From NCBI GenBank assembly GCA_965240325.2, contig OZ251237.1:1673601-1737600 (forward strand): a stretch of 64,000 nt of DNA, given 5' to 3'. The notes beneath the pieces were generated by a model. The model was not told the origin of the DNA and made no database searches. It saw nothing but the letters and a program-made list of their open reading frames with translations. Shown here piece after piece: positions 13,057 through 63,100 of the stretch; within the stretch, counting starts at the first letter, position 1; every line of letters starts with the position of its first letter. Both the position numbers and the translations under genes were made by a program. The DNA is from Rebecca billardiae RCC1528 (lineage: Eukaryota > Protista > Haptophyta).

Positions 13057-14484
13057 TCAGCGGCGCGCACAGCGCAGGGGCGGCAGCTGCACCGCGCGCT
13101 GCGGCATCGGCTGCGCTCCGCCGTCGTCGCCCACACCTAGGCCGAGCGCACCCGAACGCTTGCCGCATGCGTGCACGCCGCCATCCGCCGTGACGTAGAG
13201 AGCGTGACATCGGCCGAGTGAGCAGTCGACCACGCGCGCATGTGCGAGGCCGTCCACCCGCTCGGGCAGCGCGCGATCCTCTCGGTCCCCCAGCCCCAGC
13301 TGGCCGTAGAGGTTGAGCCCAAACGCGTGCACGCTGCCGTCCGCGCACACCACCGCGCTGCTGTGCAGGCCCGCGCTGGCGCGCACGACCCGCACGCCCA
13401 TCAGTGCTTCGATGCGCGTGGGCACCAAACGACGCGTCTGGTCGCCCTGACCATGCTCGCCATAACAACTACCGCCTCCGAAGGAGTGCACGCCGCCCGC
13501 TGCGTCCACCACCAGGCTGTGGAACTCGCCCGCGCTCACGTGCACGGCGTGCACGCCCACGAGCGCCTTGATGCGCCGCGGCGTGCCCTTGTGCTGCTGG
13601 TTACCGTGGCCAAGGCGGCCGTCCTTGGCCTTCCCGCACGAGTACACGGCGCCGCACGCCGAGAGCAGCAGCGTGTGCGCCCAGCCCGCGGCCACGCCGC
13701 CCACGCGCACGCCATGCAGGGCCTGGATGCGGGTCGGCTCCAGCCGGTGCTTCCTGTCGCCGTGGCCGAGCTGGCCATCGCCGTTGTCGCCCCAGCTGTA
13801 CGCCGCGCCCGCCGCCGTCAGCGCGAGGCTGTGGTCGGCGCTAGCGCAAATGCCGACGACGAGCTCCGCGCCCAGCGCCGCCACCCGCACGAACGCCCGT
13901 CGCTCAGCCTTGTCGCCCACGCCCAGCTGGCCGTACCGGTTGTGGCCGCACGCGTACACCGCGCCCGCCTCGCTCAGCGCGAGCAGGTGCTTGATGCCGG
14001 CAGCCACCGCGCGCACGTGCACCGCCTCGAGCGAGGCCACGCGCGTCGGCACGAGCACGCGCGTCTGCCCGCTGAGCTCGGGGTGGCCCAGCGGTGCGCC
14101 GCACGTGTGCACGCCGCCGTCCGCGTCGACAAACGCGCTGAACGCGTCGTCATACGATCCACCGGAGGCTGCACTGTGCGTGTGCTCGTGCGCGAGCTCG
14201 AGCATACGCTCGCGCGCGAGCAGCTCCTCCGCCCACGTGGACACGCCCGCCGGCAGAGTGGCTGGCAGCGCGGCCTCATGCCCGCGCGCGCGCGCGCGCT
14301 CGCGCAGCGCGTGCTCGAGCGGCGCGCCGCTGAAGAGGCGCGCGGCGGCGTTGGCGGCGGCGAGGTCGCGCGTGCCATCGAGGTGCACGATGATGCGCGC
14401 GACGAGCTCGGGCGGCACGTCGGTCAGCCGCACGGCAGCCGCTGCCGAGCGCGCCTTGGCGCGCGCGCGCGTCGTCGGCGCCAT
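13057..14484 (-). CDS. F-box-like + RCC1-repeat beta-propeller protein, paralog 1
   Basis: LTDVPPELVARIIVHL..DL F-box-like motif; repeated VYxxGxNxxGQLGxGD...P and xAGxxHxLxL RCC1 blades; intronless. Confidence 0.9.
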   Translation of the reverse strand: MAPTTRARAKARSAAAAVRLTDVPPELVARIIVHLDGTRDLAAANAAARLFSGAPLEHALRERARARGHEAALPATLPAGVSTWAEELLARERMLELAHEHTHSAASGGSYDDAFSAFVDADGGVHTCGAPLGHPELSGQTRVLVPTRVASLEAVHVRAVAAGIKHLLALSEAGAVYACGHNRYGQLGVGDKAERRAFVRVAALGAELVVGICASADHSLALTAAGAAYSWGDNGDGQLGHGDRKHRLEPTRIQALHGVRVGGVAAGWAHTLLLSACGAVYSCGKAKDGRLGHGNQQHKGTPRRIKALVGVHAVHVSAGEFHSLVVDAAGGVHSFGGGSCYGEHGQGDQTRRLVPTRIEALMGVRVVRASAGLHSSAVVCADGSVHAFGLNLYGQLGLGDREDRALPERVDGLAHARVVDCSLGRCHALYVTADGGVHACGKRSGALGLGVGDDGGAQPMPQRAVQLPPLRCARR

Positions 14485-14606
14485 GCTGCGCGAACCCGTC
14501 GTCGTTTTGTGGCGGCGACGAAAAAAGCAGCCGCTATTAAAATCGGCGGGGTGCACGATGGAGTGAGGCCCAGTTACGATACGCTCAGGACCTCCAGGCT
14601 GGCGAC

Positions 14607-15246
14607 ATGCGCTTTAGCGTCTCTCTGACCAACACCTCGAACGAGACGCTGACGAAAGCCGACGAGGGCAACGAGTGCAACGTCGACCCCGGGGGCCCGG
14701 TCGAAACCTTCTTCCCGGATGTGCTCATACCGCACAGCACCGATCGCAACACGGTCTTCTATCTCAACGACGGCAGCGCCAAAAGCATCGATTGCCACTA
14801 CGCGTACAAGACGGAGGTGCGCGCGCCGCGCCGCGCCGGGTGCTGTCGGGGCCGCGATGCCGTCGCGGTGCGGTGAGTCCACACCCGTGTCGCCGCCTCA
14901 CCGCCGGCTGCGCACCCCCTCGGTCGCCTCCCTGCGCCTGCTTGCCCCCCCCCCCCCCCCCCTCCCTTGCCTCTCGACGCAGGAGGGCTGCACCGTCACC
15001 GGCGCCGTGTTCGAAAACAACAGCAACCTGATCCGCACGGATGCCGACGGCACCTGCGGCATGCCGGTCCGCGCATACAACATGAACGATACCTCCTTGA
15101 ACCAATTGTCCGCGTGGATCCTCCTTGGCGGCCCTCTCCGTTGAGCAGCCCTGCAGGCGACCTCTGCCGTGAAGGAGGTGTACGTGGACGACCCGCAGGC
15201 CTCCCCCGACGGCGCCATGGACCTGTGGGTCGGCCCCGGCGCCTGA
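14607..15246 (+). CDS. Small spliced gene of unknown function (intron 14817-14982); first stop at 15142-15144 with an in-frame coding-like continuation to 15246; may be a fragment or pseudogene
   Basis: High-GC3 codons; GTGCGC..CGCAG intron joins YKTE|EGCTVTG in phase 0. Confidence 0.55.
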
Positions 15247-16417
15247 CTGAGCAGCCCTGCACGGCATGATGGCGATACTGGAGTATGCTATGATGGCTGA
15301 TGATGGCTGTGCGTGCACGGCGCGATCGACCGATCGTGGCCTGGGCCTGGCCCGCCTGGCGGGAGCCTGGCGGCCAGTGTCGTGCGCGCTCTGTCGTCGT
15401 GCTCTGGTGCCAGTAGCCCGAGTAGGTATAGTAGGTACGCGCGTCGCGCGGCGGCAGTAGCCTTAACTACGTGACTACTCCGCCGCCGGTGAGCCCTACT
15501 GGCAGTACTGCTGGTTATACGGCCGGTAGTATAGCCTGGTCGTATATTATATAAAATAACAGCGGGGGCCTAGCGGCCTTTTCCCGGCGGGGCTGGTCGA
15601 ACACAGCGCGTCTAGGACGCGACGGAGAAGCTTGCCAGGGCCGGCAGACCCGACGACGATGGGACGAGTTGGCCGTTCAGCGCTGACTAACGGTATCATC
15701 CGGGCTGCCGCGTCTTCTGCGCGTCGCGCGTGCGATTTAGCCATTAGCCAGGCCCACCGAGGCGCCAGCGAGGCGCGCGTCGATGCAGTCGTCGCTGCGC
15801 ACGGCCGCTCGGGCACGGCGGCACGGCAACGGCACGCACCGATCACGCCGTGCGTGCGCGCGTCGGCCATCGACGCGTGGTAGTCGTGCAGCAACTGCAG
15901 CTCCGTGGGGTTTTCCGCACGTCGTGCGCGCTGCTGCCGCCGGACGCCCAGATGGCGCGCGACCGCGTCGGTCGCGGCGGCCTCGCGCTCCGCCTCCTCA
16001 TCTGCACGACACACGCCGCGTACACCACGAACAAATCGTTCTCGTGCACGACCTCGCCAGCCGACGCGTCCATGTCGAGCACGGCGGTGAAGACACTCTC
16101 GTCGGGCCCTCCTCGAGGCGGGAGTTTGGGGAAGGGCGTAAGGCGGTACTGGGTAGGGGGTACCGTAAGTAAGATCGCCGCCAGATTTATGGGAATCGCA
16201 ACGACATCCCTATGAGGCGCGCTCAAAAAGGTAACGACATGCGTTCTCGATTCCCGAGGCGTGCCTAATCAAAAAACGTTTCAGGCCCCATTATGTTCGT
16301 ATTCCTACTCCGGTATTACTCTCCCCATCAGTATTGGACACCAATTAAAGGGGGTCGGAGCTGGGTCTCCCAGGGCTTTGTCACGAATTAAAATTGTTTA
16401 AAGCTGTGTTCACCAGA

Positions 16418-16500
16418 ATATATATTATATATATATATTACTATATATATATAATATATATAATAACAATATATTGATCTATGCGCCCTCGGAGTAGTAG

Positions 16501-16549
<49 letters not shown>
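16418..16549. repeat. AT-rich / (TA)n microsatellite region
   Basis: Direct reading. Confidence 0.9.
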
Positions 16550-16550
<1 letters not shown>

Positions 16551-17077
16551 TGACATGCAGTATGGTACGCTGCCTGATCATCAGGCCGCCCGCCCCAGTG
16601 ACAGTCATGCCTGCTCCAGCCTGGCACCGCTTCGGGCACTGCGGCCGTCGGCTTCGGGAGTCGTTCTTTCTGCTGCGATGAATCGCTGCCGCCACTTCCA
16701 GTTCCAGGCCGCGGAGGGAATGTCGAAGGGCATTCAAGCCCACGGCGTGAACGCCGCACCGCGCGCCACGCACAGTGCGAGCTCGAGCTCGGGCCGGCGG
16801 CTCTGAGCGAGCGAGCTGCTCTGGCACCGCCCGTGCTGCAGCTGACTGAACACGAGCCTCAGCGGCGACTCCGCCTTGCTCCGCTCGGGCTGTGCGCGAA
16901 CGGAGCCCGTGCACTGCACGTACACCGAGGCACTCTGGTCGATGACCTCGTCAGTGGCTGGCGCCTGGCGGAGCAGCCCATCGCAGCCCATTTGGCGTGC
17001 GGAAGGCGGCGGTGAGCACTCACACACCGCGCACTCACAAGCCTGCGCGACCAGCGCAACCGCCACTGGCCGTGCGC

Positions 17078-18496
17078 TCAGCGCGGCCCACAGCGCAGGG
17101 GCGGCACCTGCACCACGCGCTGCGGCATCGGCTGCACTTCGCCACTGTTGCCCACGCCCAGGCCGAGAGCGCCCGAATGCGTGCCGCACGCGTGCACACC
17201 GCCGTCCGCCGTGACGTAGAGGGCGTGCTCGTAACCAAGTGAGCAGTCGAGCACGCGCGCATGCGCGAGGCCCTCCACCCGCTCGGGCAGCATGCTAGCC
17301 ATTCGGTCCCCCAGCCCCAGCTGGCCCAAGTAGTTGCTCCCAAACGCGTGCACGCTGCCGTCCGCGCACACCACCGCGCTGGTGAATAGGCCCGCGCTGG
17401 CGCGCACGGCACGCATGCCGCCCAGCGCTTCGATGCGCGTGGGCACCAATCGACTCGCCTGGTCACCGTGGCCGAGCTCGCCACCACTACCGCCTCCGAA
17501 GGAGTGCACGCCGCCCGCTGCGTCCACCACCAGGTTGTGGTAGCGGCCAGCGCTCACGTGCACGGCGCGCACGCCTGCGAGCGCAGCGATGCGCCGCGGC
17601 GTGCGCTGTGCCTGCTCGTCACCATGCCCAAGGCGACCATCAATGGCAGTCCCGCACGAGTACACGGCGCCGCACGCCGAGAGCAGCAGCGTGTGCCCCC
17701 AGCTCGCGGCCACGCCGCCCACGCGCACGCCGTCCAGCGCCTCGATGCGCGTCGGCTCCAGCCGGCGCTCCGTGTCGCCGTGGCCGAGCTGGCCCATATC
17801 GTTGATGCCCCAGCTGTACGCCGAGCCAGCGGTCGTGAGCGCCAGGCTGAGGGCAAGGCCAGCGCCGATGCCGACGACGAGCCCCGCACCCAGCGCCGCC
17901 ACCTGCACGAACGCCCGTGGCGCAGCCGTGTCGCCCACGCCCAGCTGGCCGTACTCGTTGCAGCCGCACGCGTACACGGCGCCCGCCTCACTCAGCGCGA
18001 GCAGGTGATTGTAGCCGGCAGCCACTGCACGCACGCGCACCGCCTCGAGCGAGCCCACGCGCGTCGGCACGAGCACCCGCGCCTGCCTGCTGAGCTCGGG
18101 ATGGCCCAGCGGTGCGCCGCACGTGTGCACGCCGCCGTCCGCGTCGACAAAAGCGCTGAACTCGTCGAAATACATTCCACCGGAGGCTGCAATGCGCGTG
18201 TGCGCGTGCGCGAGCTCGAGCACACGCTCGCGCGCGAGCAGCTCCTCCGTCCACGTGGACACGCCAACGGGCAGGCTCGCCGGCAGCGCGGCCTCGTGCC
18301 CGCACGCGCGCGCGCGCTCGCGCAGCGCGTGCTCGAGCGGCGTGCCGCGGAAGAAGCGCGCGGCGGCGTTGGCGGCGGCGAGGTCGCGCGTGCCACCGAG
18401 GTGGACGAGGATGCGCGCGACCAGCTCGGGCGGCACGTCGGTCAGCCGCGCGCACGCCGGTGGCATCGTCGTCGAGGCGGCCGACGCAAACGGCAT
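17078..18496 (-). CDS. F-box-like + RCC1-repeat protein, paralog 2
   Basis: Same architecture; highly similar to paralogs 1, 3 and 4. Confidence 0.9.
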   Translation of the reverse strand: MPFASAASTTMPPACARLTDVPPELVARILVHLGGTRDLAAANAAARFFRGTPLEHALRERARACGHEAALPASLPVGVSTWTEELLARERVLELAHAHTRIAASGGMYFDEFSAFVDADGGVHTCGAPLGHPELSRQARVLVPTRVGSLEAVRVRAVAAGYNHLLALSEAGAVYACGCNEYGQLGVGDTAAPRAFVQVAALGAGLVVGIGAGLALSLALTTAGSAYSWGINDMGQLGHGDTERRLEPTRIEALDGVRVGGVAASWGHTLLLSACGAVYSCGTAIDGRLGHGDEQAQRTPRRIAALAGVRAVHVSAGRYHNLVVDAAGGVHSFGGGSGGELGHGDQASRLVPTRIEALGGMRAVRASAGLFTSAVVCADGSVHAFGSNYLGQLGLGDRMASMLPERVEGLAHARVLDCSLGYEHALYVTADGGVHACGTHSGALGLGVGNSGEVQPMPQRVVQVPPLRCGPR

Positions 18497-18738
18497 GACG
18501 GTTGGCGCGCGAAAAGATTATTAAAGAGGGTCCGGGGTATTTGATGGTCCTTTCAATGGTCCGGCCATCCGGGCTGATTTATTCCGCGCACGCCTTATTT
18601 TATTTTAGTATATTATTCTTTTCTGCTGCGTTTCTTTGCGTGCTCGCGCGATCTCACTACAGATCAGCATCAGATACTTGAATCCGACGACGCGCGTTCA
18701 TCGGTGAGTGTGATGTATTCAGTATTGCTGCTGATGAA

Positions 18739-18870
18739 GTTGTCCCGCGGTGCCGTGCGTCACAGCCCGGAGAGTAGCGCGGCGTGCTCGCGCAGCGCGG
18801 GCTCGAGCCGGCGCGCGGCAGCAGCGATGTGCGGCACCCACGCGAGCAGCTCGAACGCGCCCTCCTCGCC
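18739..18870 (-). pseudogene. Inverted duplicate of the 3' end of the 22886-26877 gene
   Basis: Reverse complement matches about 26767-26901 (EEGAFELLAWVPHIAAAARRLEPALREHAALLSGL*). Confidence 0.85.
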
Positions 18871-19106
18871 GCCGATCGCCTCCGCAGGCTAGCACTGCGG
18901 GCCAGTTGCGGGTTGGGTGGGGAGACGGGGCTTGGGGCAGGTGCGCCCTGGGTGCCACTGCGTGCCAGTCTGAGCGGAAGGGCCTCGGACGCCTCGGTCA
19001 GCCGCCAGACAGCAGCGGCAGTGCCACGCCGTGCCACACCGCCGTCGTCTGGAGTCGTGCGGCCGCGGCACGTGCGCCCGCGCGCGCACGGCCCGCGCGG
19101 GTGTGC

Positions 19107-22100
19107 TCACGCGCCCATCTGCGCGCGCACGCTGACCAGCCGGTAGCTCTGCGCCGCGCCCAGCCGGTGCTGCGCGCCCACCAGCCCGGCGAGGGCGAGC
19201 AGCGCGTCCGCGCGCGCCTCGAGCCGCGCGCGCTCGGCGCCGGCGCCGCCCGCGCGCGCGTGCAGCGCGCGCACGCACTCCATGGCGCGCGCGAGCAGCG
19301 GCGGCAGCAGCCGCTGCGCCGCGGGCGCCATCGCGCCGACCGCGCGCGCGCACGCGTCCACCTCCGCCGCCTGCGCGCGCGGGGGGCGGGGGGCACGGGG
19401 CGGGCGGGCGCGTGGGCGGTCTGCGCGCGGCTGCCGCAGCGGCCGCGCCGTGCGCGCGCGCAGCCCGCCGCGCGCACCGTGTGTGGCAGCAGCCGGATGT
19501 CGTCGGCGGCGGCGAGCGCGGCCGCGGCGTCGCCCGCGGCCGCGCGCTCGAAGGCGCGCGCCATCGCCAGCAGGCTGCCGAGCGAGCGCGCGGCGGGCGC
19601 GGCGTCTGCGGGCAGCGCGGCCGCGCGCCGTGCGCACGCGTCGTGCACGTCGCGCGCGTCCGCGATGGCAGCCGCCGCCGCGGGGTGCAGCGCGCCGCCG
19701 CCGCCGCCGAGTGCGCACGGCGCCTCCGGCATGGCGAGCAGCGCGTCCGCCAGCGCGGCCGCGCTCAGCGACAGCGCGCGCGCGGGCTCAGCCGCGCCGA
19801 GCAGCAGGTGCGCCTGCGCGGCAGCGGGGGCGGGGGCGGCGGGGCAGCGCGCGCAGCAGCGCGGCAGCGGCAGGGGCGCGTGAGGCGCCGTGCGCACAGC
19901 CCGCCACGCCGCATATGCCGCATCGCGCGTGGCCCCGGCAGCGCGCGCGCGCCCCCTTCCGCGCTTGTGCGCGCGCACCGCCTCCGCCCAGCCGCCCGTC
20001 GCCTCGAGCCGCGCGGCCGCGCGCACGGCCAGCGCCCTGCGCCCGGGCTGCCCCACAAAGCCGAGGTCGTCCGCAGCGGCGCGCTGCGCGCTCGGGCCGC
20101 CAAACGAGCGCGGCGCCGGCTGCGTGAGCAGCTCCTGCAAGGGCGCGGGCGGGGTGGCGCGGGGCGGCGGCGTGCGTGCGTGCGCGCGTGAGTCGCGGTG
20201 GCGGTGCGGTGGCGTGCGCCGCGCTGCGCCGCGCTGCGCCGCGCCGCGCGTGCGCACACCCTGGCTCGGCCCGACTCGACGAGGATGGCCGCTGCGGCGT
20301 CGAGGCGCGCGTCGTCGTGCGCGGCCAGCGGCGCGAGCAGCCACGCGTACCGCACGGCCGCGCCCACCGACTCGGCCGCCAGCGCGCGCGCGTGCGCCTG
20401 AGGGGCGGCGCGGTGCACGGCAGCGGTGGCGCGCGTGAGCCGGCGCGGCGCGGCGCGGGCTTCGCGGCGGCGGCGGTGCGCGCGGTGGTGCGCGCGCGCT
20501 CTGGGCCGCACCTCGAGCATTGGAGCAAGCCGCACGGCCACGCGCCCGCGCGCGTCCACCGCCAGCGGCGCCGCGAACGGCTGCGCGGGCTGCGAGTGCG
20601 CGCCCCCCCAGCCCTCCCCTGCGCTGGTTGGCGCGTGCGGCGCCTGCGTGGCGAGCAGCCCGTGCGAGGCGAGGGCGATGGCGACGTGCAGCCCGTCCAC
20701 GCGCGTGGCGTGCGAGGCGACGAGGTGCGCCACCGCCCCCTCGAGCTGCAGCGACGCCAGCAGCACCGAGGCGTACAGCAGGTCGGACGAGCCGCCGCCG
20801 CCCCCCTGGCCGGCGCCGTGCTCGGTGCCGGGGCCGTGCTCGGTGGCGCCAAAGTGCTTCGGGCCGTACGTGTGCGAGAGCAGCTCCTGCAGCGCCCACA
20901 GCGCGGCGAAGCGCGCGCCCGGCGCGTCCGCGCCCGCCCCGCCGGGCGCGGCGCGCGCGTCCGCGTCCGCCGCCGCCACGGCCAGCTTGTGCCACGTGTA
21001 GTCCTCGACCGTCTGCAGGGAGAGCCGGCACGCGGCGCGCGGCGCGACCGCAGCGGCCGCGTTGTACACGAGGGTGCACCACTCGAGCAGCTGCGGCGCG
21101 GAGGCGCCGGCGGCGTCGGGCGCGGCGGCGGCGCCGCCCGCCGCGCCGCCGTCGCCGCCCGCCGCCGCGTGCGCCCAGTGCGCCGCCCACTCCTGCCGGC
21201 ACGCCGCCACCAGCTCGGCCGAAGCGCAGCCCTCCGCGTCGTCCGCGCGCGCGCGCAGCGCGCGCGCGAGCGCGTCCGTGCGGCCGGCGAGGAGGCGGGA
21301 GGCGGCGCGCGCGGCGTCGAGCGCGCGCGACGCCGCGCCCAGCTCTGCCGCGCGCGCACACGTGTACAGCATGCCCCACAGCTGCGCGGGGCCCGCGCCC
21401 CCGCCGAGGTGGACCAGCTCGGCGCACGGCGCCGCGGACGGCTGCGCGCCGGACGCGCCGAGCGTGCTCGCGCGCACGTACGCCGCGGCGGTGTGCTCGA
21501 AGCCGCCGCGCCCGCCGCGCGCGCCGTCGGCCGGCGCCGCCGCCACGCGCGCGTGCGCGACCGCCTGCGCGCCGGCGCGCGCGGCCGGCGAGGGCGGGCG
21601 CGCGGCGCGCGTGAGCGGTGCGCGCGTACACGGGCGCGCGCGCGGAGGGGCGCGCGCGCGAGGGCGCGAGGCGTCGCGCGCACCCGGAACTGCGCGCCGA
21701 GGTGCGCGAGCGAGCCGCCGAGCAGCGCGCGCACGAGCCGCGGCTCGCGCGCGCGCCACGGCCCCTCCGCGCCCGGCCTCGGCGCGGGCAGCGCGCCGCC
21801 GCGCGCCGCGCCGTGCGCCGCTCGCACGAGCGCCTCGACCAGCGCCCACACGTACTCAGAGAGGCGGCGCAACGGCTCGGCGTGCGCGCCGCCGGGCGTG
21901 TGCGCGCGCAGCGCGGCGGGCACGCGCGCGAGCTCGCTCACCAGCGCGGGCTGCGACGCCGACGGCGCGGCGGGCGGCGGCGGCTGCGCGCCCGGCGCTG
22001 CGCCAAACACGGCGCGCGCGTACGCAGCGGCCTTGGCGTCGCGCAGCGCGCCCGCGGCGGCGGCGGCGGCGGCGTCGGCGGCGTCGTCGGGCGGGGGCGC

Positions 22101-22762
22101 GAGCGCGGTGCTCGCGCCGCGCGCCGCCGCGCCGCCGCCGCGCGCGTCCGCCGGCCCCGCCCAGCCGCCCGCCGGGTGCGCGAGCGAGGCGAGAGCGCGC
22201 GCATTGTCCGCCGCCCAGCGCGCCTGCCACGCGCCGAGCGACGAGGCGGCGAAGGCGCCGAGCGTGTGCGCGCGCGCGCCGTCGATCGCGGCGCACACCG
22301 CGCGCTCGCGCTGGCTCTGCGCGCGAGCGTGCGCGCGCGCGCGAGGGAGAGAGGCGAGGCGAGGCGCGGCGCGCGTGAGCGGCGACGCGCGCGCGCGCGG
22401 CGCGAGCAGCGCGCCGGCGCAAGCACCTGCAGCCAGGCGTCGAGGTCGAGGCCGTCGGCCGCGCCCGGGCCGAGCGATTCGGCCCGCCCGTCGTCGCGCG
22501 GCGCCGCGCGCCCGTCGCGCGCACGCAGCACGTCGTCCACGTCGAGCGCGCTCGCGTCGACGCCGCGCTTGGCGAGGAACGCCTGGCCCGCCGAGCGCTC
22601 CGCGTCGGCGGCGGGCGCGGTGCGCGCGCCGAGCGCGGCGGTCTGCTGGCGGATCTGCGCGAGGTCGCGCGACACGGGCCCGAAGCCCGCGCCGTCCGCG
22701 TCCGCGCGCGCGGCGAGGCGCTGCGAGCCGCGCAGCAGCTCGGAGAGCGACGCGGCCTCCAT
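19107..22762 (-). CDS. NUP93: Nucleoporin Nup93/Nic96, multi-exon
   Basis: N-terminus LSELLRGSQRL..PVSRDLAQI..AFLAKRGVD..DLDAWLQ..AVCAAID; LWGMLYTCARA; TVEDYTWHKL; YGPKHF; LYASVLLASLQLEGAVAHL; DGLHVAIAL..HGLL. These match my recollection of Nup93/Nic96 blocks. Confidence 0.85.
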
Positions 22763-22885
22763 CGACACGAGCGGCTTGGCAGCGCGGCCGAGCCGAGGCC
22801 GAGGCCGAGGCGCTCTGCGCTGTGAGACATACAGCCGGACTTGCACTTGCCCGGCCGGTGGGCCGGCCCCGGACTGCATCGCGCG

Positions 22886-25800
22886 ATGGCGACGGAGGGC
22901 GCGACGCTCGCCGCCGAGGTCGGCGAGCTCGCCGCGCGGCTGGGCGCGCTCGCGTCGGCGGTGGGCGCGGGCACGCACGCGCCGACGGACGCCTCCGCCA
23001 CGCACGCCCTCCTCCGCCGCCTCGCCGCCGACCTCGGCGCCGCGGACGAGCGCGCGCACGCGCTCGGCCTCGTGCGCGCCGCGCGCGCCGCGGCCGCGGC
23101 CGACGCGGCCGCCGGGGTGCGCGACGGCGGCGGCGGCGAGCTCGACGCGCTGGTGCGCGGGGTGCGCGACGCGGTCGCCTCGCGCCGCGCCGAGCTCGCG
23201 CGCGCCCTCGCCTCCGCGCACGCCGCCGGCCTGCGCGCCTCCGACTCTGCGCTCGACGAGGCGGTGGGCGCGCGAGAGACGGGCGCAGGAGGCGGCGGCG
23301 GGCGCGGTGGCGGCGGCGGCGCGTGGGGCGAGGCGCTCTCGCTCGCCGCGCTCGCCGACGTGCCGCCGTACGAGGCGCTCGTCCCCGCGCTCACCGCGCT
23401 CTGCGCCGCCCCCGCCGCCGCCGCCGCCGCCGCAGCCGCCGCCGCCTGCTGCGGCCGTGCTGCGCGCGTGGCGCGTGGTCGGCGCCTTCTCCGCGCTCGA
23501 GCTGCTGGGCGGGGAGGGCGCGGAGCTGCTGCCCGGGGCGCTGTGCGCGGTGCTCCGCGCGGCGGACGCGTGCGCGGGCGCCCACGCGCCCGACGCGCCC
23601 GAGCTGCGCGAGGCCGCGCGCGCCGCGCACAGCCTGTGCGCGCGGCTGCTCGCGCGCGCGGACGAGGGCGGCTGCGCGCAGATCGGCGCCGCGCTCGCGC
23701 CGCTGCTGCGGCGGACGCGGGCGGCGGCGGCGGGCGGCGCAGGCGCCGGCGGCGAGGCCGAGGCCGAGGCGTGGCGCGTGCTGCGCGCGCGGCTGCTCCT
23801 CGCCGCCACCGTGCGCGCCGCGCGGGGCGGCGTGCACGTGCCCGCGCCGCACGCGCGCGCGCTCGTGCGCGCGCACTGCGACGCTCACGGCGCCACCGGC
23901 GTGGCGGCGGCGGCGGCTGACGGCGCGTCGTCGGCCGGCGCGCTGCTCGCGCGGCTCGACCCGAGCGCGGCGGCGCTGCGCGCGCTGCTGCAGCCGCCGG
24001 GCTGGGCGCGCTGGGTGGTGGCGGTGGCGGAGGCGGAGGCGGAGGCGGAGGCGGAGGCGGAGGCGGAGGCGGAGGCAACGCCCATGGCTGCCGGCGGGGG
24101 GGCGTCGGCAGCCACGCCCATGGCTGCCGACGCCGACGCCGCCGAGAGCGCCGACAGCCCGCCCCTCCTGGCCGCGGTCGCGGCGGAGGTCGCGGCCGCG
24201 CTCGGCGCGCCGACGCCCGCCGCGTGGCCCGCGCGCGGCGCCGCGTGCGCCGCGCGCGCGCACGCGCTGTGCGCCGCGCTCGCGCTCGCGCGCGCGCAGC
24301 CGACGCGCGCGCCCCTGCTCGGCGCGCTCGGCGCCGCGCGCGCGGGCGGCGCGGCCGCGGCGCACGCGCGGCTGCTGGGCGCCGCGCTGCGGCATGCGTG
24401 CGCGCCGCTGCCGCCGCACTCGCCGCCGGCGGACGCCGGCGCGTCCGCGGCGGACGGCGCGGACGGTGCGGAGGCGCGTGCGGCCGCCTCGCTCGGCTCT
24501 GCCGCGTGCAGCGCGCTGCTCGAGGCCGCGTGCGCGGACTGGGCGCAGCACGCGGCAGCAGACTGGGCGCTGCACGCGGGCGCGGCGGCGGGCGGCGGCG
24601 AGGAGGCCACGCGCGTGCTCGCGCGCGCCATCGGCGAGTGCTGGCCCGCGCAGCCCGCCGCGCGCGCCGCCGCCGCGCTGGCGCGCGCGGGCGCGGCGTG
24701 CGCGCGCGCGCTGTGCGCCGAGCGCGCGTGCGCGGCCGCGCTGCTCGGCGCCGCCGCGGCGGGCGGCGGCGGCGCGGCGTGCGCGCGCGCGCTGCGCCGC
24801 GCGCTCGCGAGCCCCGCCGCGGCGCGCGCGCTCGCCGCCGCGGGCGCGGCGGACGGCGCGTGGGCGCGCGCGCTCGGCGGCGCGCCGCCCGCCGCGCTGC
24901 GCGCGCTCTGCGCCGGCGGCGCGGGCGGCGCGGCGCTGGCGGTGGGCGCGGGCGCCGCGCGCCGCGCCGCGGCCGCGTGCGCGCCCTCGGCGCGCGCGCT
25001 CGGCGCGCTCGCCGCCGCGCTCGGCGCGGCGGGCGCGGCCGGCGCGCACGCGGCCGACGCGGCGGCCGCGCGCGCCGCCGTGCACGCCGTCGCCGAGCGC
25101 GACGCCTCCGCGCTGCTCGGCCGCTCCTCCGCCGCGGCGGACGCGCTCGGCCTCGGCCTCGCCGCAGGCGCGGGCGCGGAGGGCGGCGCCGAGGGCGGCG
25201 GCTGCGCGGCCGCGGCCGCGGCCGCCGCGCGGCTGAGCGCGCTGCTGCGCGTGCCGTGGGTGCGCGATCGGCTGCTGCGCGCGCGCGGCGGCGCGCTCGC
25301 CGCCGCGCTGGGCGGCGGCGGCGGCGAGGGCGCGGCCGCAGGCGCGGCGCTGGTGTGCGCGGCCGCGGCGTGCGCGGGCGCGGACGGCGGCGCCGCGCTG
25401 TGCGCTGCCGCGCCCGCGCTCGCGCACGCGCTGCGCACCCACGCCGACGCGGACGCGAGCTCGGCCGGCGTGGGCTGCGCGCAGGCGCTGTGCGGCGTGG
25501 GCGCGCGCGCGCTGCAGCTGGGCGCGCACGCGGCCGAGCCGATGGCGGCGCTCGAGGCGGCCGGGGCGGCGGCGGCGGAGGAGGAGGAGGAGCGCCCGGC
25601 AGCAGCGGCAGCGGCAGCAGCGGGTGCGGTGGGTGCGGCGGTGCCGGTGTCGCTCGGGCGGACGGCGGAGTGGCTGGGCGGTGCGCACCCCGCGCTGCGC
25701 CCCGCGCTGGGCGCTGACCGCTGCGGCCTGCGCGCGCTGTGCGCCGCGCTCGACGGCGCGGGCGCGGCGCCGCCATCGCAGCCGACGCCACCGCCACGGC

Positions 25801-26877
25801 CACCGCCGGCCGGCGCGCCGCCCTTCAGCCAAGCGGGCGCGGGCGCAGACGCGGGCGGCGGTAGTGGCAGCGCGGAGGCCAGCGCGCACTGGCGCGCCGC
25901 CGCGGCGATGCTCACGGCGGCCGCGGCACGGGAGGCGCTGCTGCCGCCCTCTGCCGCGGCGGAGGGCGGCGCCCCGCTGCTGCGCATGCTGCACGCACTC
26001 GGCGGCGCCGCGCTCGGCGGCGCGCACTCGCAGCACTCGCAGCACGCGCCGACAGCGGCGGACGCGGAGACAGGGGCGGGTGCGGAGGGTGCGGGCGGTG
26101 CGCCCTTCCCCTGGGGCTGTGCGCTGCTGTGCGTGCTCGCGTGGGACGCGCCACACGACGAGCTGCGCGCGCTGTGTGAGGTGCAAGCACCGGCCCGCGC
26201 CTCGCCGCGCCGTGCCGCGCGCCCGGCGCCGCGCGCGCACTGCGCCACTGGCGCCCCGCGCGCGCGCGAGCTGACCCGCGCACCGCGCGCACCGCGCACC
26301 GCAGACGCGCACCGCCGCGCTCGGCGGCGGCGGCGACGCGGGTGCCGCGTGTCTGGCGGCGCTCTTGGCGGACGAGGCGCTGGTGTCCGAGCAGCCGGCG
26401 CTGGGCGGCGCGCTCGCCCTGGCGGGCGTGAGCGCGGCGCCGTGCGCGCTCAGCTGGGCGCGCAGCGCGCACGCGGGCGCGCTGCCGCTGCGTGCCGCGT
26501 GCGCGCTCGCTGCGCTCGGCGTTGCGCTCGGCCCGGGCGCGCCCCTCGCGACGAGCCTCGCGCTGCTCGCGCACGCGCAGGTGCGCGCGCGCGGGCCGCG
26601 CGCGGCGGCCGGCGCTCGCGCGCGCGCCCGCGGCTCACGCGCGCCACGCGCCACGCGCCCGCGCCCGCGCCGGCAGCCGCGCGCGCTTGGCCGTGCGCAC
26701 CGCGCGCACGCGCCGCTCGGCCTTATGCTGAGCGTGGCGAGCGCGCCCGCGGCGGGCGAGGGCGGTGGCGAGGAGGGCGCGTTCGAGCTGCTCGCGTGGG
26801 TGCCGCACATCGCTGCTGCCGCGCGCCGGCTCGAGCCCGCGCTGCGCGAGCACGCCGCGCTACTCTCCGGGCTGTGA
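22886..26877 (+). CDS. Large Ala-rich helical protein of unknown function; introns 26181-26304 and 26581-26676; apparent frameshift near 23410
   Basis: Host-like codon pattern in successive frames; canonical introns restore the frame at the 3' end. Confidence 0.6.
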
Positions 26878-27134
26878 CGGATGACGGCACCGCGGGACAA
26901 CGTGCCATCAGCAACGCATCACAATCATCACCGGTGAACGCGTCGGAAGGCACGGTCGCGATCTGCTGCTGCTGATCGCGCGAGCAGGCAAACTCGTAGT
27001 CGAAAAGCGCACCGAGAAACAATAAAGCAGAAATCAGCAGGCCTGTACATCTCCTCTTTCGCATTTTGAATTTGATATTCTCGCCGAGCTGCGCCAACAC
27101 CGTCGTTCTGTAGGCAGCTTCGGCCCCCTCGACG

Positions 27135-28562
27135 ATGATGCCACTACCGGCGTGCGCGCGGCTGACCGACCTGCCGCCCGAGCTGGTCGCGCGCGTGCTC
27201 GTGCACCTCGATGGCACGCGCGACCTCGCCACTGCCAGCGCCGCCACGCGCCTCTTCCGCCGCGCGCCGCTCGAGCACGCGCTGCGCGAGCGCGCGCGCG
27301 CGCGCGGGCACGAGGCCGCGCTGCCGGCGACCCTGCCCGTTGGCGTGTTCACGTGGGCGGAGGAGCTGCTCGCGCGCGAGCGTGTGCTCGAGCTCGCGCA
27401 CGCGCACGCGCACGTCGTGACTGCCGCCGGAGACGCTCTGTGGGAAGTTGAATTTAGCGCGTTTGTCGACGCGGACGGCGGCGTGCACACGTGCGGCGCA
27501 CCGCTGGGCCATCCCGACCTCAGCAGGAAGACGGACGTGCTCGTGCCGACGCGCGTGTGCTCGCTGGAGGCGGTGCACGTGCGTGCGGTGGCTGCCGGCC
27601 GCACGCACCTGCTCGCGCTGAGCGAGGCGGGCGCCGTGTACGCGTGCGGCGATAACGAGTACGGCGAGCTGGGCGTGGGCGACAAGGCTGAGCGACGGGC
27701 GTTCGTGCAGGTGGCGGCGCTGGGTGCGGAGCTCGTCGTCGCCATCGGCGCTGGCGCCGACCACAGCCTCGCGCTCACGGCTGCGGGCGTAGTGTACAGC
27801 TGGGGCGACAACGGCAGCGGCCAGCTCGGCCACGGCGACGCGAAGCAGCGGCTGGAGCCGACCCGCATCCAGGCCCTGCATGGCGTGCGCGTGGGCGGCG
27901 TGGCCGCGGGCTGGGAGCACACGCTGCTGCTCTCGGCGTGCGGCGCCGTGTACTCGTGCGGGGGTGGCTATGCTGGCCGCCTTGGGCACGCTGGCGAGCA
28001 GTCTCAGCACACGCCGCGGCGCATCGCAGCGCTTGCAGGCGTGCGCGCCGTGCATGTGAGCGCGGGCCGCCACCACAGCCTGGTGGTGGACGCAGCGGGC
28101 GGTGTGCACTCCTTCGGACATGGTAGCGTTGGCGCACTCGGCCACGGTGACAAGGTGGATCGTTTGGTGCCCACGCGTATAGAAGCGCTGATGGGCTTCC
28201 GTGCCGTGCGCGCCAGCACGGGCTCTGGCAACAGCGCGGTGGTGTGCGCGGACGGCAGCGTGCACACGTTTGGGAGCAACTACTACGGCGAGCTGGGGCT
28301 GGGGCACCGAATGGGTCGCACGCTGCCAGAGCGGGTGGAGGGCCTCGCGCATGCGCGCGTGGTCGACTGCTCACTGGGCCGATGGCACGCACTCTACGTT
28401 ACGGCGGACGGCGGCGTGCACGCGTGCGGCTCCCACTCAGGCGCGCTGGGCGTGGGCGTAGGCGGCGATGGAAGAGCCGGAGCGCTGCCGACGCCGCAGC
28501 GCGTGGTGCAGCTGCCGCCCCTGCGCTGTGGGCCGCGCTGGGCATCATTCGGGCAGATCTGA
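27135..28562 (+). CDS. F-box-like + RCC1-repeat protein, paralog 3
   Basis: LTDLPPELVARVLVHL plus RCC1 blades. Confidence 0.9.
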   Translation: MMPLPACARLTDLPPELVARVLVHLDGTRDLATASAATRLFRRAPLEHALRERARARGHEAALPATLPVGVFTWAEELLARERVLELAHAHAHVVTAAGDALWEVEFSAFVDADGGVHTCGAPLGHPDLSRKTDVLVPTRVCSLEAVHVRAVAAGRTHLLALSEAGAVYACGDNEYGELGVGDKAERRAFVQVAALGAELVVAIGAGADHSLALTAAGVVYSWGDNGSGQLGHGDAKQRLEPTRIQALHGVRVGGVAAGWEHTLLLSACGAVYSCGGGYAGRLGHAGEQSQHTPRRIAALAGVRAVHVSAGRHHSLVVDAAGGVHSFGHGSVGALGHGDKVDRLVPTRIEALMGFRAVRASTGSGNSAVVCADGSVHTFGSNYYGELGLGHRMGRTLPERVEGLAHARVVDCSLGRWHALYVTADGGVHACGSHSGALGVGVGGDGRAGALPTPQRVVQLPPLRCGPRWASFGQI

Positions 28563-28811
28563 GGCGGTGCGTTCATTGAGCTGCGCGCGTGGGCTCCGCA
28601 CACCGCTGTTGTCTAGATCCATCGACGTTGCGCAACCACACACAACACGACGTCGACGCGGAGTCGGCTGTCGAGACAGTGTCGAGTGTCGATGAGATTT
28701 AGCACCCATGAAAAAGAATTGAGTGCGAAAATCACTGATGCAATTTAACCCCGCATACCAAAAAAACCAAAGGATAGTGAGCCAAGGACAGCGGTGGCGC
28801 GAGCACCCTCG

Positions 28812-30236
28812 ATGGCACCGACGACGCGTGCGCGCGCCAAGGCGCGCTCGGCAGCGGCGGCCGTGTGGATGACCGACCTGCCGCCCGAGCTGGTCGCGCG
28901 CATCCTCGCCCACCTCGCTGGCGTGCGCGACCTCGCCGCCGCCAACGCCGCCGCGCGCCTCTTCCGCGGCGCGCCGCTCGAGCACGCGCTGCGCGAGCGT
29001 GCGCGCGCGCGGGGGCACGAGGCCGCGCTGCCGGCGACCCTGCCCGTTGGCGTGTGCACGTGGGCGGAGGAGCTGCTCGCGCGCGAGCGTGTGCTCGAGC
29101 TCGCGCACGCGCACACGCGCAGCGCAGCCTCCGGTGGATCGTATGGCGGAGCGTTCAGCGCGTTTGTTGGCGCGGACGGCGGCGTGCACACATGCGGCGC
29201 ACCGCTGGGCCATCCCGAGCTCAGCGAAGAGGCGCGCGTGCTCGTGCCGACGCGCGTGGCCTCACTCGAGGCGGTGCGCGTGGATGCAGTGGCTGCCGGC
29301 GACAAGCACCTGCTCGCGCTGAGCGAGGCGGGCGCCGTGTACGCGTGCGGCAGCAACGGCTACGGCGAGCTGGGCGTGGGCGACAAGGCTGAGCGACGGG
29401 CGTTCGTGCAGGTGGCGGCGCTGGGTGCGGAGCTCGTCGTCGGGATTTGCGCTGGCGCCGACCATAGCCTTGCGCTCACAGTTGCGGGCGTGGCGTACAG
29501 CTGGGGCCGCAACGCCTGGGGCCAGCTCGGCCACGGCGACAGGCAACGACGGCTGGAGCCGACGCGCATCGAGGCGCTGGACGGCGTGCGCGTGGGCGGC
29601 GTGTCCGCGGGCGGGAGGCACACGCTGCTGCTCTCGGCGTGCGGCGCCGTGTACTCGTGTGGGTATGCCGGTTACGGCCGCCTTGGGCACGGTGACGAGC
29701 AGCAGCAGCGCACGCTGCGGCGCATCGAGGCGCTCGCGGGTGTGCGCGCCGTGCACGTCAGCGCGGGCCTCTCGCACAGCCTGGTGGTGGACGCAGCGGG
29801 CGGCGTGCACTCCTTCGGAGACGGTCATGGTGGCGCACTCGGCCACGGTGACCAGGCGCCTCGATTTGTGCCCGCGCGCATCGACGCGCTGGGCGGCATG
29901 CGTGCCGTGCGCGCCAGCGCGGGCTGTTACACCAGCGCTGTGGTGTGTGCGGACGGCAGCGTGCACGCGTTTGGGCGCAACTACTTGGGCCAGCTGGGGC
30001 TGGGGGACCGACTCGCTCGCATTCTGCCCGAGCGGGTGGAGGGCCTCGCGCATGCGCGCGTGCTCGACTGCTCACTCGGCGATCAGCACGCCCTCTACGT
30101 CACAGCAGACGGCGCCGTGCACGCGTGCGGCACGCATTCGGGCGCGCTCGGCCTGGGCGTGGGCTACAGTGGCGATGTGCTGCGGACGCTGCAGCGCGTG
30201 GTGCAGCTGCCGCCCCTGCGCTGTGGGCCGCGCTGA
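28812..30236 (+). CDS. F-box-like + RCC1-repeat protein, paralog 4
   Basis: MTDLPPELVARILAHL plus RCC1 blades; ATG at 28812 matches the paralog 1 start MAPTTRARAK. Confidence 0.9.
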   Translation: MAPTTRARAKARSAAAAVWMTDLPPELVARILAHLAGVRDLAAANAAARLFRGAPLEHALRERARARGHEAALPATLPVGVCTWAEELLARERVLELAHAHTRSAASGGSYGGAFSAFVGADGGVHTCGAPLGHPELSEEARVLVPTRVASLEAVRVDAVAAGDKHLLALSEAGAVYACGSNGYGELGVGDKAERRAFVQVAALGAELVVGICAGADHSLALTVAGVAYSWGRNAWGQLGHGDRQRRLEPTRIEALDGVRVGGVSAGGRHTLLLSACGAVYSCGYAGYGRLGHGDEQQQRTLRRIEALAGVRAVHVSAGLSHSLVVDAAGGVHSFGDGHGGALGHGDQAPRFVPARIDALGGMRAVRASAGCYTSAVVCADGSVHAFGRNYLGQLGLGDRLARILPERVEGLAHARVLDCSLGDQHALYVTADGAVHACGTHSGALGLGVGYSGDVLRTLQRVVQLPPLRCGPR

Positions 30237-30681
30237 GCACAGCCGCCGCCCGCGCGCGCTTGGCTGGGCAGCCGCACGTGGCCACGAAGTGCCTGCCTCG
30301 CCCTCGCCATCAGGCCAGAGTGTCCGGTCGGCGGACCGTGCGCGCCCTCGTTCCTTCAGCGCGCGTGCACTACCAGTACCAAGGTACCCCCATACTGGAT
30401 TACTGCTCTTGGGCTCCAGAACTAGTCCAGTCTGTGTGACTGGTGAGTCGACTTTGTAATCGGCGAAGCATCAAACGTGAAACATCGTGTTCACTGATGA
30501 ACCGCCTTTTTCTCCTCGCATCCTCAGCGCGAGATACCATCTGGCCGCAGTGACTCGGCGAAAAACGACGGCCTGCATTGGCGCGTCGCGAGGGGCAAGC
30601 GGCGCATTCACGCTCGAACCGGCTGATTCGACTCGTGGCCGGCCGCCAGCTCGGCCCGCGCAGGCCGCGCGCCACGCCGGC

Positions 30682-32151
30682 ATGGCGCTGGCGCCGACGC
30701 AGCTGGAGGACATGCCCGCCGAGGTGATCGAGCGCGTCCTCGTCGGCCTCGGCGCCGCGTGCGACCTCGCCGCCGCCAACGCCGCCGCGCGCCTCTTCCG
30801 CGGCGCGCCGCTCGAGCACGCGCTGCGCGAGCGCGCGCGCGCGCGCGGGCACGAGGCCGCGCTGCCGGCGACCCTGCCTGTTGGCGTGTCCACGTGGACG
30901 GAGGAGCTGTTCGCGCGCGAGCGCGTCTCCGAGCTCGCGCGCGCGCACGCGTGCCCCGCCTCCGCCGGCGGCGCGGGCCTGAGCCACGTGGGCGCGTTTG
31001 CGTGCGCGGACGGCGCGGTGCTCACGTGCGGCGAGGAGCGCGTGCTCGTGGTGGGCGGCGTGTGGGACTACCGCTCGCCCGCCGCGCTGGGGCACTCGGA
31101 GCTGCGCCACTCGCCCGTCCGCACGCCGCGCCCCGTGCGCTGCCTCCCCGCCGCCGTGCGCGTGCGCGCGCTCGCGTCTGGCTTTGAGCACGTGCTGGCG
31201 CTCACGCACGGCGGAGGGCTGCACGCGTGCGGGGCGAACGGGCACGGGCAGCTGGGGCTGGGCGACACGCTCGAGCGGCGCTCGTTCGTGCCGATCCACC
31301 CGCCCGACCCCGAGCCCGTCGTGTGCGTCGCCGCCGGCACCGCGCACTCCGTCGCGCTCACGGCCGCGGGCTGCGCGTACAGCTGGGGCTACAACGGCTG
31401 CGGCCAGCTCGGCCACGGCGACGCGGCCGACCGCGCGGCGCCGGCGCGCGTGCACGCGCTGCGCGCCGAGCGGGTGGGCGGCGTGGCGGCGGGCGCGGGG
31501 CACACGCTCTTCCTCACCGTGCGCGGCGCCGTGCACTCGTGCGGCGTGGGCGTGCACGGCCGGCTCGGCCACGGCGACGAGCAGCAGCAGCGCGCGCCGC
31601 TGCGCATCGAGGCGCTCGCGGCCGTGCGCGCCACGCACGTGAGCGCGGGGGACACGCACAGCCTGGTGGTCGACGCGGCGGGCGACGTGCACGCCTTCGG
31701 CCAAGGCGACCACGGCGGCCTCGGCCTCGGCCACGAGCGCGACCAGCTCGCGCCCGCGCGCGTGAGCGCGCTCGCGCGCGCGCGCGCGGTGCGCGCCGCC
31801 GCGGGCGCGTCGAGCTCCGCGGTCGTGCTCGCCGACGGCAGCGTGCGCGCGTTCGGGCGGAACTGCTACGGGCAGCTCGGGCTGGGCCACCGCGTGAACC
31901 GCACGCTGCCCGAGCCCGTCGCCGCGCTCGCGCCGCACCGCGTCGTCTGCTGCTCGCTCGGCGGGCGCAACGCGCTGTACGTGACGGCGGACGGCGCGGT
32001 GCACTCGTGCGGCGAGCAGTCGGGCGCGCTCGGCCACGGCGTGAGCCTCGCGGCGGAGCGCGCGCTCATGCGGCCGACGCGCGTCGACAAGCTCGCGGTC
32101 GCCGCGGCGGACGCCGACGCGAGTCTCCGGCTCGCCGCCGTCGACGGGTGA
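30682..32151 (+). CDS. F-box-like + RCC1-repeat protein, paralog 5 (most divergent)
   Basis: LEDMPAEVIERVLVGL plus RCC1 blades. Confidence 0.9.
   Translation: MALAPTQLEDMPAEVIERVLVGLGAACDLAAANAAARLFRGAPLEHALRERARARGHEAALPATLPVGVSTWTEELFARERVSELARAHACPASAGGAGLSHVGAFACADGAVLTCGEERVLVVGGVWDYRSPAALGHSELRHSPVRTPRPVRCLPAAVRVRALASGFEHVLALTHGGGLHACGANGHGQLGLGDTLERRSFVPIHPPDPEPVVCVAAGTAHSVALTAAGCAYSWGYNGCGQLGHGDAADRAAPARVHALRAERVGGVAAGAGHTLFLTVRGAVHSCGVGVHGRLGHGDEQQQRAPLRIEALAAVRATHVSAGDTHSLVVDAAGDVHAFGQGDHGGLGLGHERDQLAPARVSALARARAVRAAAGASSSAVVLADGSVRAFGRNCYGQLGLGHRVNRTLPEPVAALAPHRVVCCSLGGRNALYVTADGAVHSCGEQSGALGHGVSLAAERALMRPTRVDKLAVAAADADASLRLAAVDG

Positions 32152-62900: not shown

Positions 62901-62931
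<31 letters not shown>

Positions 62932-63059: not shown

Positions 63060-63100
<41 letters not shown>

Follow-up and report, generated by a model that had tools for sequence, protein, structure and literature searches.

A local family of F-box-like RCC1-propeller genes with hypervariable, putatively target-binding positions near a chromosome end of the haptophyte Rebecca billardiae

Five paralogs with an F-box-like module and an RCC1-like propeller

The 64-kb stretch of Rebecca billardiae RCC1528 analysed here (contig OZ251237.1, positions 1,673,601 to 1,737,600; hereafter the window, to which all coordinates refer) contains a local family of genes encoding an F-box-like N-terminal module followed by an RCC1-like propeller, in which four of the paralogs differ mainly at a few recurring loop positions of each blade. 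The paralogs, P1 to P5, are numbered by position; residue numbers and the structure model refer to P2. Exactly five related genes, and no sixth, were found by tblastn of the candidates against the window, so the claim of an earlier note on this DNA that paralogous F-box-RCC1 genes lie here proved real. All five are intronless, uninterrupted open reading frames (ORFs), and their GC content at third codon positions, 0.84–0.94, is typical for coding sequence (CDS) in this DNA:

13057..14484, minus strand: P1 CDS, 475 amino acids, intronless (ORF and translation; six Pfam RCC1 matches, WD40_RLD 240 bits)
17078..18496, minus strand: P2 CDS, 472 amino acids (AlphaFold2 pLDDT 94)
27135..28562, plus strand: P3 CDS, 475 amino acids; best F-box-like N-terminal match of the five (E = 7e-4, 19.7 bits)
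28812..30236, plus strand: P4 CDS, 474 amino acids counted from the first ATG
30682..32151, plus strand: P5 CDS, 489 amino acids; divergent, with about 58% protein identity to P1–P4

Pairwise DNA identity among P1–P4 is 86–90%, with a synonymous divergence (dS) of 0.13–0.21 (Nei-Gojobori). The earlier description of their scaffold as almost identical captured the strong constraint on most of the protein, in which about 62% of codons have a nonsynonymous-to-synonymous rate ratio (omega) of about 0.02–0.03 under site models, but it was somewhat overstated, given that protein identity among the four is only 78–83%. Self-blastn indicates that duplication ends at the CDS borders for all paralogs except the P2/P3 pair, which have about 380 bp of upstream sequence in common (17076–18874 aligns with 28543–26763 at 82.7% identity); the span 13057–32151 also holds unrelated DNA at 14.6–17.0 kb and 18.5–27.1 kb.

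18497..18874, minus strand: P2 upstream region common to P3 (self-blastn); the only duplication beyond the CDS
26763..27134, plus strand: P3 upstream region common to P2 (self-blastn)

Each of the five proteins matches six RCC1 repeats and the RCC1-like-domain model of Pfam far above threshold (PF00415, 194–214 bits against a cut-off of 21.7; PF25390, 237–394 bits against a cut-off of 150). An AlphaFold2 model of P2, computed from an alignment of 47 homologs and reaching a mean pLDDT of 94, has N-terminal helices at residues 23–31, 36–45 and 52–64, a long linker helix at 82–99 and seven four-stranded blades. The solved structure that Foldseek matched best to this model was UVR8 (TM 0.92), followed by the RCC1-like domains (RLDs) of HERC1/HERC2 (TM 0.86–0.88) and those of RPGR, RCC2 and RCC1; RCC1 proper is a weaker match (TM 0.75–0.78).

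13096..14175, minus strand: RCC1-like seven-bladed propeller of P1, bearing the hypervariable face (Pfam, alignment)
17117..18193, minus strand: RCC1-like propeller of P2 (model, Foldseek); selected codons include residues 162, 234, 283, 285, 296, 348, 370 and 422
27420..28502, plus strand: RCC1-like propeller of P3 (Pfam, alignment)
29121..30197, plus strand: RCC1-like propeller of P4 (Pfam, alignment)
30955..32082, plus strand: RCC1-like propeller of P5 (Pfam, alignment)

By homology, we regard the N-terminal module as a divergent F-box extended by helices specific to the family. PF12937 is the top Pfam match for the N-termini of P2, P3 and P4, and it matches 28 of the 47 full-length homologs (lowest E 1.6e-7). 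A profile search of the PDB with the N-terminal 88 positions had FBXO31, cyclin F and FBXW7 at the top, all three aligned through their F-boxes, and a fold search with the isolated module was led by Skp1-bound Fbw7, FBXO31, Fbs1, FBXO3 and FBXO22. From 1.84 billion proteins the N-terminal profile retrieved 572 representatives (50% identity clusters), 225 of them with E <= 1e-10. All ten of the long matches inspected carry an RCC1 propeller, and three of the ten exceed the curated F-box cut-offs of Pfam (P0376 at 35.8 bits, P0350 at 25.9 bits, and P0327 with PF00646 at 24.8 bits against a cut-off of 20.5; retrieved at E <= 1e-13). The signature L-x-x-L-P-x-E-L-[LV]-x-R-[IV] is present in the module alignment, together with three helices in the model, and alignment columns ~45–95, which take in the linker and the end of the F-box-like core next to it, are nearly identical across P1–P5. 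The proposed architecture of an F-box-like module plus an RCC1-like propeller is thus borne out by Pfam, the AlphaFold2 model and the homolog profiles. As a separate observation, an ankyrin-repeat block precedes the F-box-like module and propeller in two relatives, P0297 and P0327, so a three-domain form of the family exists.

14287..14430, minus strand: F-box-like three-helix core of P1 (alignment to P2 residues 17–64; no Pfam match)
18305..18448, minus strand: F-box-like core of P2 (model helices 23–31, 36–45 and 52–64; weak Pfam match)
27159..27302, plus strand: F-box-like core of P3 (sub-threshold Pfam match and alignment)
28866..29009, plus strand: F-box-like core of P4 (sub-threshold Pfam match and alignment)
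30700..30843, plus strand: F-box-like core of P5 (alignment only; no Pfam match)

Hypervariable positions, selection and gene conversion

Differences among P1–P4 concentrate at three register positions per blade, in the motifs G-x-N-x-x-GQLG, GD-x-x-x and AG-x-x-H, and all of the loop strings quoted in the earlier note were found in our alignment (IK/YN/RT/DK, HNR/CNE/DNE/SNG, DNGD/INDM/DNGS/RNAW, KAKD/TAID/GGYA/YAGY, EF/RY/RH/LS, LHS/LFT/SGN/CYT and RC/YE/RW/DQ). Each repeat runs in the order strand 4, long loop L1, strand 1, short helical loop L2, strand 2, tight turn L3, strand 3, loop L4; since the strands alternate in direction, L1 and L3 would open on one propeller face and L2 and L4 on the other. 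Sites with a posterior P(omega>1) above 0.5 are distributed as follows:

L1: 14 sites with P(omega>1) > 0.5; 98 residues in class
L3: 10 sites; 24 residues in class
L2: 3 sites; 47 residues in class
L4: 1 site; 28 residues in class
Strands: 3 sites; 161 residues in class

L1 and L3 take 24 of the 31 such propeller sites, and all ten of those with P > 0.95, an enrichment of p = 3e-7 against the rest of the propeller and of p = 0.003 against the other loops (Fisher). That the same two loops vary in nearly every blade is therefore clustering beyond chance, and the expectation that the variable sites would fall on one face agrees with both the loop topology and an alignment to UVR8. In that phmmer alignment, in which the chain index is the native numbering plus one, P2 residues 231/234 pair with R41/D44 of UVR8, 283/285 with W94 (a residue that we take to be located at the dimer interface) and D96, 296 with D107, 370/371 with A181/E182, and 422/423 with W233/R234. 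D44, D96, D107, E182 and R234 form salt bridges on the dimerisation surface of UVR8, and W233 is a chromophore tryptophan beside R234 (PMC5091643), which suggests that the hypervariable positions align with the dimer-interface face. Many of the replacements are multi-nucleotide, as the earlier note had it, with 119 of 192 codon pairs at hypervariable sites differing at two or three bases. The reported enrichment of Tyr, Trp and Arg was only partly borne out (Y 3.5-fold; W 4.3-fold, n = 3; R 1.7-fold), as D, E, S and M are enriched as well.

Selection was tested by codon maximum likelihood with an author-written GY94-type program using F3x4 or F61 frequencies, and within the window the tests rest on four close sequences, P1–P4. 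Whole-gene dN/dS among them is 0.63–0.97 (Nei-Gojobori), unusually high given that most residues are invariant. The standard site models gave log-likelihoods (lnL) of -3530.25 for M1a against -3472.11 for M2a (omega2 about 21 in 8% of sites), and of -3530.48 for M7 against -3472.41 for M8, with M8a at -3530.26; the likelihood-ratio test statistics (LRTs) are about 116, or about 120 under a second topology. Since such tests allow only a single synonymous rate for the whole gene, we added, as a rate control, a model in which the third site class may have a higher total rate. Across 32 data sets simulated under the fast-neutral null, the M1a/M2a LRT was 42–145 (median 75). The comparison of M7 with M8 that the earlier note had proposed is thus positive but not decisive, and both standard tests were dropped as decisive evidence because they fire on simulated fast neutral sites too. 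Freeing omega in the fast class gave lnL -3470.15, with omega 6.2, a rate of 2.4x and an LRT of 11.2 (p about 8e-4), and the rate-controlled LRT was 10.6–17.9, with omega 8–14, when a star tree, the propeller alone or F61 frequencies were used. On the 32 null simulations this statistic behaved as a chi-square with one degree of freedom (mean 0.84, maximum 4.86), and the observed 10.8 was never reached.

A non-circular set of 42 codons was also defined by motif register alone (x1, x3 and x4 of G-x-N-x-x-G, the three residues after GD, and the two of AG-x-x-H, in regular blades). Fitted with free branch lengths of its own, the set gave an omega of 2.56 (LRT 8.64 against omega = 1, p = 0.003). 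It evolves about 11x faster than the other 285 propeller codons (omega 0.25), with a tree length of 6.6 substitutions per codon compared with 0.61. The predicted excess of dN/dS above 1 at the variable sites was therefore upheld both with the local substitution rate left free and on the a-priori codon set, and omega > 1 at the binding-face sites (about 2.6–14) is supported at the level of about 1e-3, not 1e-25. Decay of the genes as pseudogenes, or neutral decay, was ruled out by the five of five intact ORFs and the low omega of most codons.

The genes also bear traces of conversion. Quartet support at parsimony-informative sites is mosaic along their length, favouring 14|23 at the 5' end and at columns 313–334, and 13|24 at columns 270–282 and 377–484, in agreement with N-termini common to P1/P4 and to P2/P3. 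In P5, a tract of about 150 bp covering the F-box and linker is 95–98% identical in DNA to P2/P4, compared with 55–80% in the rest of the gene. Run-length permutation identified further tracts between P1 and P3 (columns 272–294, p = 0.0035) and between P3 and P4 (columns 209–236, p = 0.0005).

30760..30912, plus strand: probable gene-conversion tract in P5 (sliding-window identity, run-length permutation)

At invariant codons, synonymous third-position divergence is 0.14–0.27 within two codons of a hypervariable site versus 0.07–0.10 farther away, a rise of about 2x (p = 0.01, permutation stratified by amino acid). One would predict such a rise where conversion evens out the scaffold but tracts wiping out selected differences are eliminated, and it accounts for the rate term of about 2x in the models; it is far too small for hypervariable codons that evolve 7–11x faster.

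Relatives, known systems and genomic surroundings

The best homolog outside the window is 51% identical, and the contigs of the nearest homologs, P0001 and P0035, are short and single-gene. A metagenome scan with P1–P5 gave 93 pattern matches, none of them a relative, and so provided neither closer relatives nor alleles of these genes. The nearest named homologs are Emiliania huxleyi CCMP1516 proteins (37–38% identical), one of which is annotated at source as F-box domain-containing; the two members examined in the CCMP1516 assembly are single-exon and dispersed. The consensus of eleven E. huxleyi-like sequences, mutually 68–78% identical, is an almost perfect repeat, variable only at AG-x-x-H, WG-x-G-x-x-G and GD-x-Q-x-Q. 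When metagenomes were scanned with this subfamily, 159 stretches matched and 80 loci were retained; the 29 complete ORFs are all distinct, 60–80% identical, and carry at least nine residue types at the register positions. The rate-controlled LRT for the E. huxleyi-like set is 24.8 (omega 1.8), and 28 a-priori register codons have an omega of 2.88 versus 0.29 for the rest (LRT 54, p = 2e-13), a result that is less secure because the tree was fixed and recombination ignored. The hypervariable-face pattern thus recurs in an independent subfamily, and it is at these positions, too, that all 47 homologs of the alignment vary. One E. huxleyi-like metagenomic locus (L061), the only one to do so within the short flanks covered, has two members adjacent on opposite strands, at 254–1531 and 1989–2726.

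The architecture itself has a precedent in FBXO24, a mammalian subunit of the Skp1–cullin–F-box (SCF) ligase that, like the window proteins, combines an F-box with an RCC1 domain; FBXO24 is, however, a single conserved gene with a germ-line function, absent from the top sequence matches of the window proteins, and to our knowledge it has no hypervariable face. FBXO24 binds SKP1, CUL1 and RBX1 (PMC10932545). RCC1-like propellers also serve as protein-binding modules of ubiquitin ligases in HERC1/HERC2 and in RCBTB-type BTB-RCC1 proteins, but there the link to the ligase is a HECT or BTB domain, not an F-box. We know of no hypervariability in the HERC or RCBTB propellers. RCC1 proper, the guanine-nucleotide exchange factor of Ran, is characterised by a conserved Ran-binding face with a beta-wedge and by a chromatin-binding N-terminal tail; the N-termini of the window proteins are F-box-like. 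UVR8, the plant UV-B photoreceptor, resembles the window proteins in its seven-bladed RLD and in the alignment of their hypervariable positions with its dimer interface, but it is a conserved single gene with no F-box and with three GWRHT motifs (W233/W285/W337); at the equivalent positions P2 has YN, LA, WG, RY, LF and YE, which are different in each paralog. A UVR8-like photoreceptor was accordingly rejected, the GWRHT tryptophan triad being absent in the window proteins.

The pattern of variation has closer counterparts elsewhere, and the earlier likening of these genes to diversifying F-box families and fungal hypervariable propellers was apt. The F-box and MATH-BTB adaptor families of nematodes and plants, which Thomas in 2006 (cited in PMC12062965) reportedly described as expanded and positively selected, are likewise multi-copy local cullin-ligase adaptors with selection in the substrate-binding domain and a conserved F-box, and a pathogen role has been proposed for them; they differ in occurring in animals and plants and in recognising substrates through FTH/FBA, kelch, LRR or MATH domains rather than an RCC1-like propeller. 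With five local paralogs, omega > 1 at the binding face and a conserved F-box-like/linker segment, the window cluster fits this diversifying-adaptor pattern. In plant S-locus F-box (SLF/SFB) arrays, clustered F-box paralogs diversify in their recognition domains to cover many partners; these differ in having an FBA/FBK recognition domain and in being tied to a pollen-pistil incompatibility locus, a kind of locus of which the window shows no sign. Fungal HET-E/HET-D/NWD NLRs carry WD40 repeats of high internal conservation (PMC1805685, PMC4986451). Like the window proteins, these HET-type NLRs have an invariant propeller scaffold with a few hypervariable selected positions per blade on one face, and concerted evolution and recombination among members, but their propeller is of WD40 type and is joined to a NACHT/NB-ARC and a cell-death effector domain. 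The window proteins are RCC1-type and have neither domain, and Pfam found no NACHT or NB-ARC domain in P1–P5. The near-identical internal repeats of the HET type are absent in the window proteins, where blade-to-blade identity is about 40% (mean 0.38–0.41, maximum 0.52), but present in the E. huxleyi-like relatives, in which blades within one protein are up to 77–87% identical (mean of maxima 0.77; P0021 0.87). Internal blade identity in the window proteins is thus ordinary, and conservation lies between paralogs, not between repeats. Our search of the literature on hypervariable RCC1 proteins or haptophyte F-box expansions found no description of such a family.

The window is very GC-rich eukaryotic nuclear DNA (62–87% GC) without an Rfam match over its whole length. 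Its other genes include a Nup93/Nic96-like ORF, kinases, a SelR domain and further ordinary genes; the closest named protein to the casein-kinase-II alpha gene at 43154–44560 is from Diacronema lutheri (77% identity), which would by itself point to a haptophyte, perhaps a pavlovophyte. A telomeric array indicates that the window reaches a chromosome end, which places the cluster 31–50 kb from that end:

62901..63930, plus strand: telomeric (TTAGGG)n array, about 1 kb, then about 65 bp of (TTTAAC)n to 63993 at the very end

Degenerate CCCTAA-like repeats of 12 and 18 bp lie just inside this array in the opposite orientation (62609–62889). An approximately 800-bp repeat occurs in three copies (6350–7154, 7986–8770 and 11566–12370; 98–99.9% identical; two direct, one inverted), between which lie a minus-strand ORF at 9893–11146, which weakly matches the DDE_3 (Tc1/mariner-type) transposase, as well as a 200-bp tandem array at 8865–9717; this repeat-flanked DDE-like ORF, some 700 bp from P1, is probably a recently active transposable element. 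The (GA)45 microsatellite at 12705–12798 lies about 260 bp past the 3' end of P1, and the (TA)24 microsatellite at 16502–16549 about 530 bp past that of P2. The stretch 20000–26000 is 83–87% GC, with CG-rich tandem repeats at 24191–25061 and ORFs of 1,200–1,800 codons open in several frames on both strands that have no Pfam match; the Nup93/Nic96-like ORF (19768–21855, minus strand) is its only recognisable gene. Only 28 bp past the P5 stop codon, at 32179–33867 on the plus strand, begins an ORF with a SelR/MsrB (methionine sulfoxide reductase B) domain at its C-terminal end; its first 385 or so residues are Ala/Pro-rich and of low complexity, and the real start is probably further downstream. 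Local duplications include a 1.1-kb tandem pair (34097–35185 and 35427–36515, 93% identical) and a series at 51358–54374 (period about 1.4 kb, 75–83% identity). The single long ORF at 40029–42932 on the minus strand, with GST N-terminal domain matches and a 1-Cys peroxiredoxin C-terminal motif, may be a fusion or two read-through genes.

A diversifying receptor family and its alternatives

On balance, we think it probable that P1–P5 are a local family of substrate receptors for SCF ligases, with a diversifying binding face and with a scaffold and docking module that gene conversion and purifying selection keep constant. As we infer, docking on Skp1 would fall to the F-box-like module with its family-specific helical linker, and the seven-bladed propeller would bind its target via one face, to which every blade contributes its G-x-N-x-x-GQLG / GD-x-x-x loop and its AG-x-x-H turn. 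Purifying selection and conversion would keep the scaffold and F-box module alike, and diversifying selection would drive and preserve replacements at the binding-face positions, so that each paralog may present a different recognition surface. The most likely setting would be genetic conflict with fast-evolving partners, for example viral or other selfish-element proteins, and an immune role of the family is plausible.

Several points weigh against this reading. PF12937 scores only 13.4–19.7 bits on the N-termini of P2, P3 and P4 against a cut-off of 24.3, and P1 and P5 have no Pfam F-box match; the PDB profile matches of the module have E values of 0.07–0.7, and the fold matches are all at E >= 1. 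Skp1/SCF engagement, ubiquitination and the nature of the targets are what we infer, and the proposed one-face arrangement is read from strand topology and the UVR8 alignment rather than from measured coordinates. No homolog was found in a scan of viral contigs, and no link of the family to infection. As for selection, the author-written codon models were checked solely by simulation under the null, and gene conversion violates their assumption of a single tree, which the star tree eases but does not remove. With about 6.6 substitutions per codon the selected sites approach saturation, which makes the magnitude of omega imprecise. Lastly, a fast neutral class (omega = 1, rate about 7x) reaches lnL -3475.74, almost equal to M2a, so that the case for omega > 1 rests on p of about 1e-3.

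That last fit also speaks for a reading without positive selection, in which the register positions are unconstrained surface loops in recent duplicates, perhaps with locally raised mutation or micro-conversion, and the look of a repertoire is a by-product of free loops on a rigid scaffold. The fast neutral null also yields M1a/M2a statistics as large as those reported above, the same positions vary across all 47 homologs, and synonymous divergence is raised near hypervariable sites. However, freeing omega in the fast class improves the fit in every setting tried, to a value above 32 of 32 null simulations, and the a-priori codons have omega above 1 both here and in an independent clade. Moreover, the hypervariable class outpaces the omega = 1 class or the remaining propeller by about 7–11x; with a flanking synonymous rise of only about 2x, local hypermutation is too weak to explain the difference. 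We regard this explanation as quite unlikely. Less probable still is that the N-terminal module is not a working F-box and the proteins act outside the ubiquitin system, as an RCC1-type exchange factor, a scaffold or a UVR8-like sensor. The sub-threshold F-box scores, a conserved N-terminal module of 88 positions, about twice the F-box length, and closest solved structures that are UVR8 and other RLDs rather than F-box proteins would suit such a role, but relatives with the same module exceed the F-box cut-offs, the signature and three helices are present, and the UVR8 triad is missing; hypervariability on the same face is also hard to square with a conserved catalytic or sensor face.

Diversifying SCF receptors need not be antiviral. 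They could instead serve self/non-self or mating recognition, or the control of transposon proteins, meiotic drivers or toxin-antidote genes. The tight local cluster near a chromosome end, conversion among its members, the DDE-transposase-like element close to P1 and the lack of a viral link in the viral-contig scan are all in keeping with such functions, for which tandem SLF F-box arrays and nematode F-box families offer precedents. The window, however, bears no mark of a mating-type or incompatibility locus, the two CCMP1516 members examined are dispersed rather than clustered, and the data do not discriminate between target classes; we consider non-antiviral roles unlikely. A broader proposal, in which the window genes belong to an as yet undescribed haptophyte F-box–RCC1 superfamily whose hypervariable face acts as a germ-line repertoire resembling innate immunity, sending giant-virus or other parasite proteins to the proteasome, is in our view possible but unlikely. 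If true, algae would have in it a counterpart to nematode F-box families and to the hypervariable-propeller NLRs of fungi.

The combination of F-box and RCC1 domains, diversifying F-box families and propellers hypervariable on one face were each already known; new is their combination, in which haptophyte-type algae have an F-box family with an RCC1-like propeller for its hypervariable part, including an E. huxleyi-like branch with highly conserved internal repeats. After WD40 and kelch, the RCC1-like propeller would be the third type turned into a hypervariable receptor scaffold, and the cluster is a clear case from nature in which gene conversion and diversifying selection act side by side near a chromosome end. 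Intracellular virus recognition by marine microalgae is barely understood, and the virus-driven collapse of haptophyte blooms is ecologically important. The family, which recurs in at least two distant branches, one including Emiliania huxleyi, provides concrete candidates for that role.

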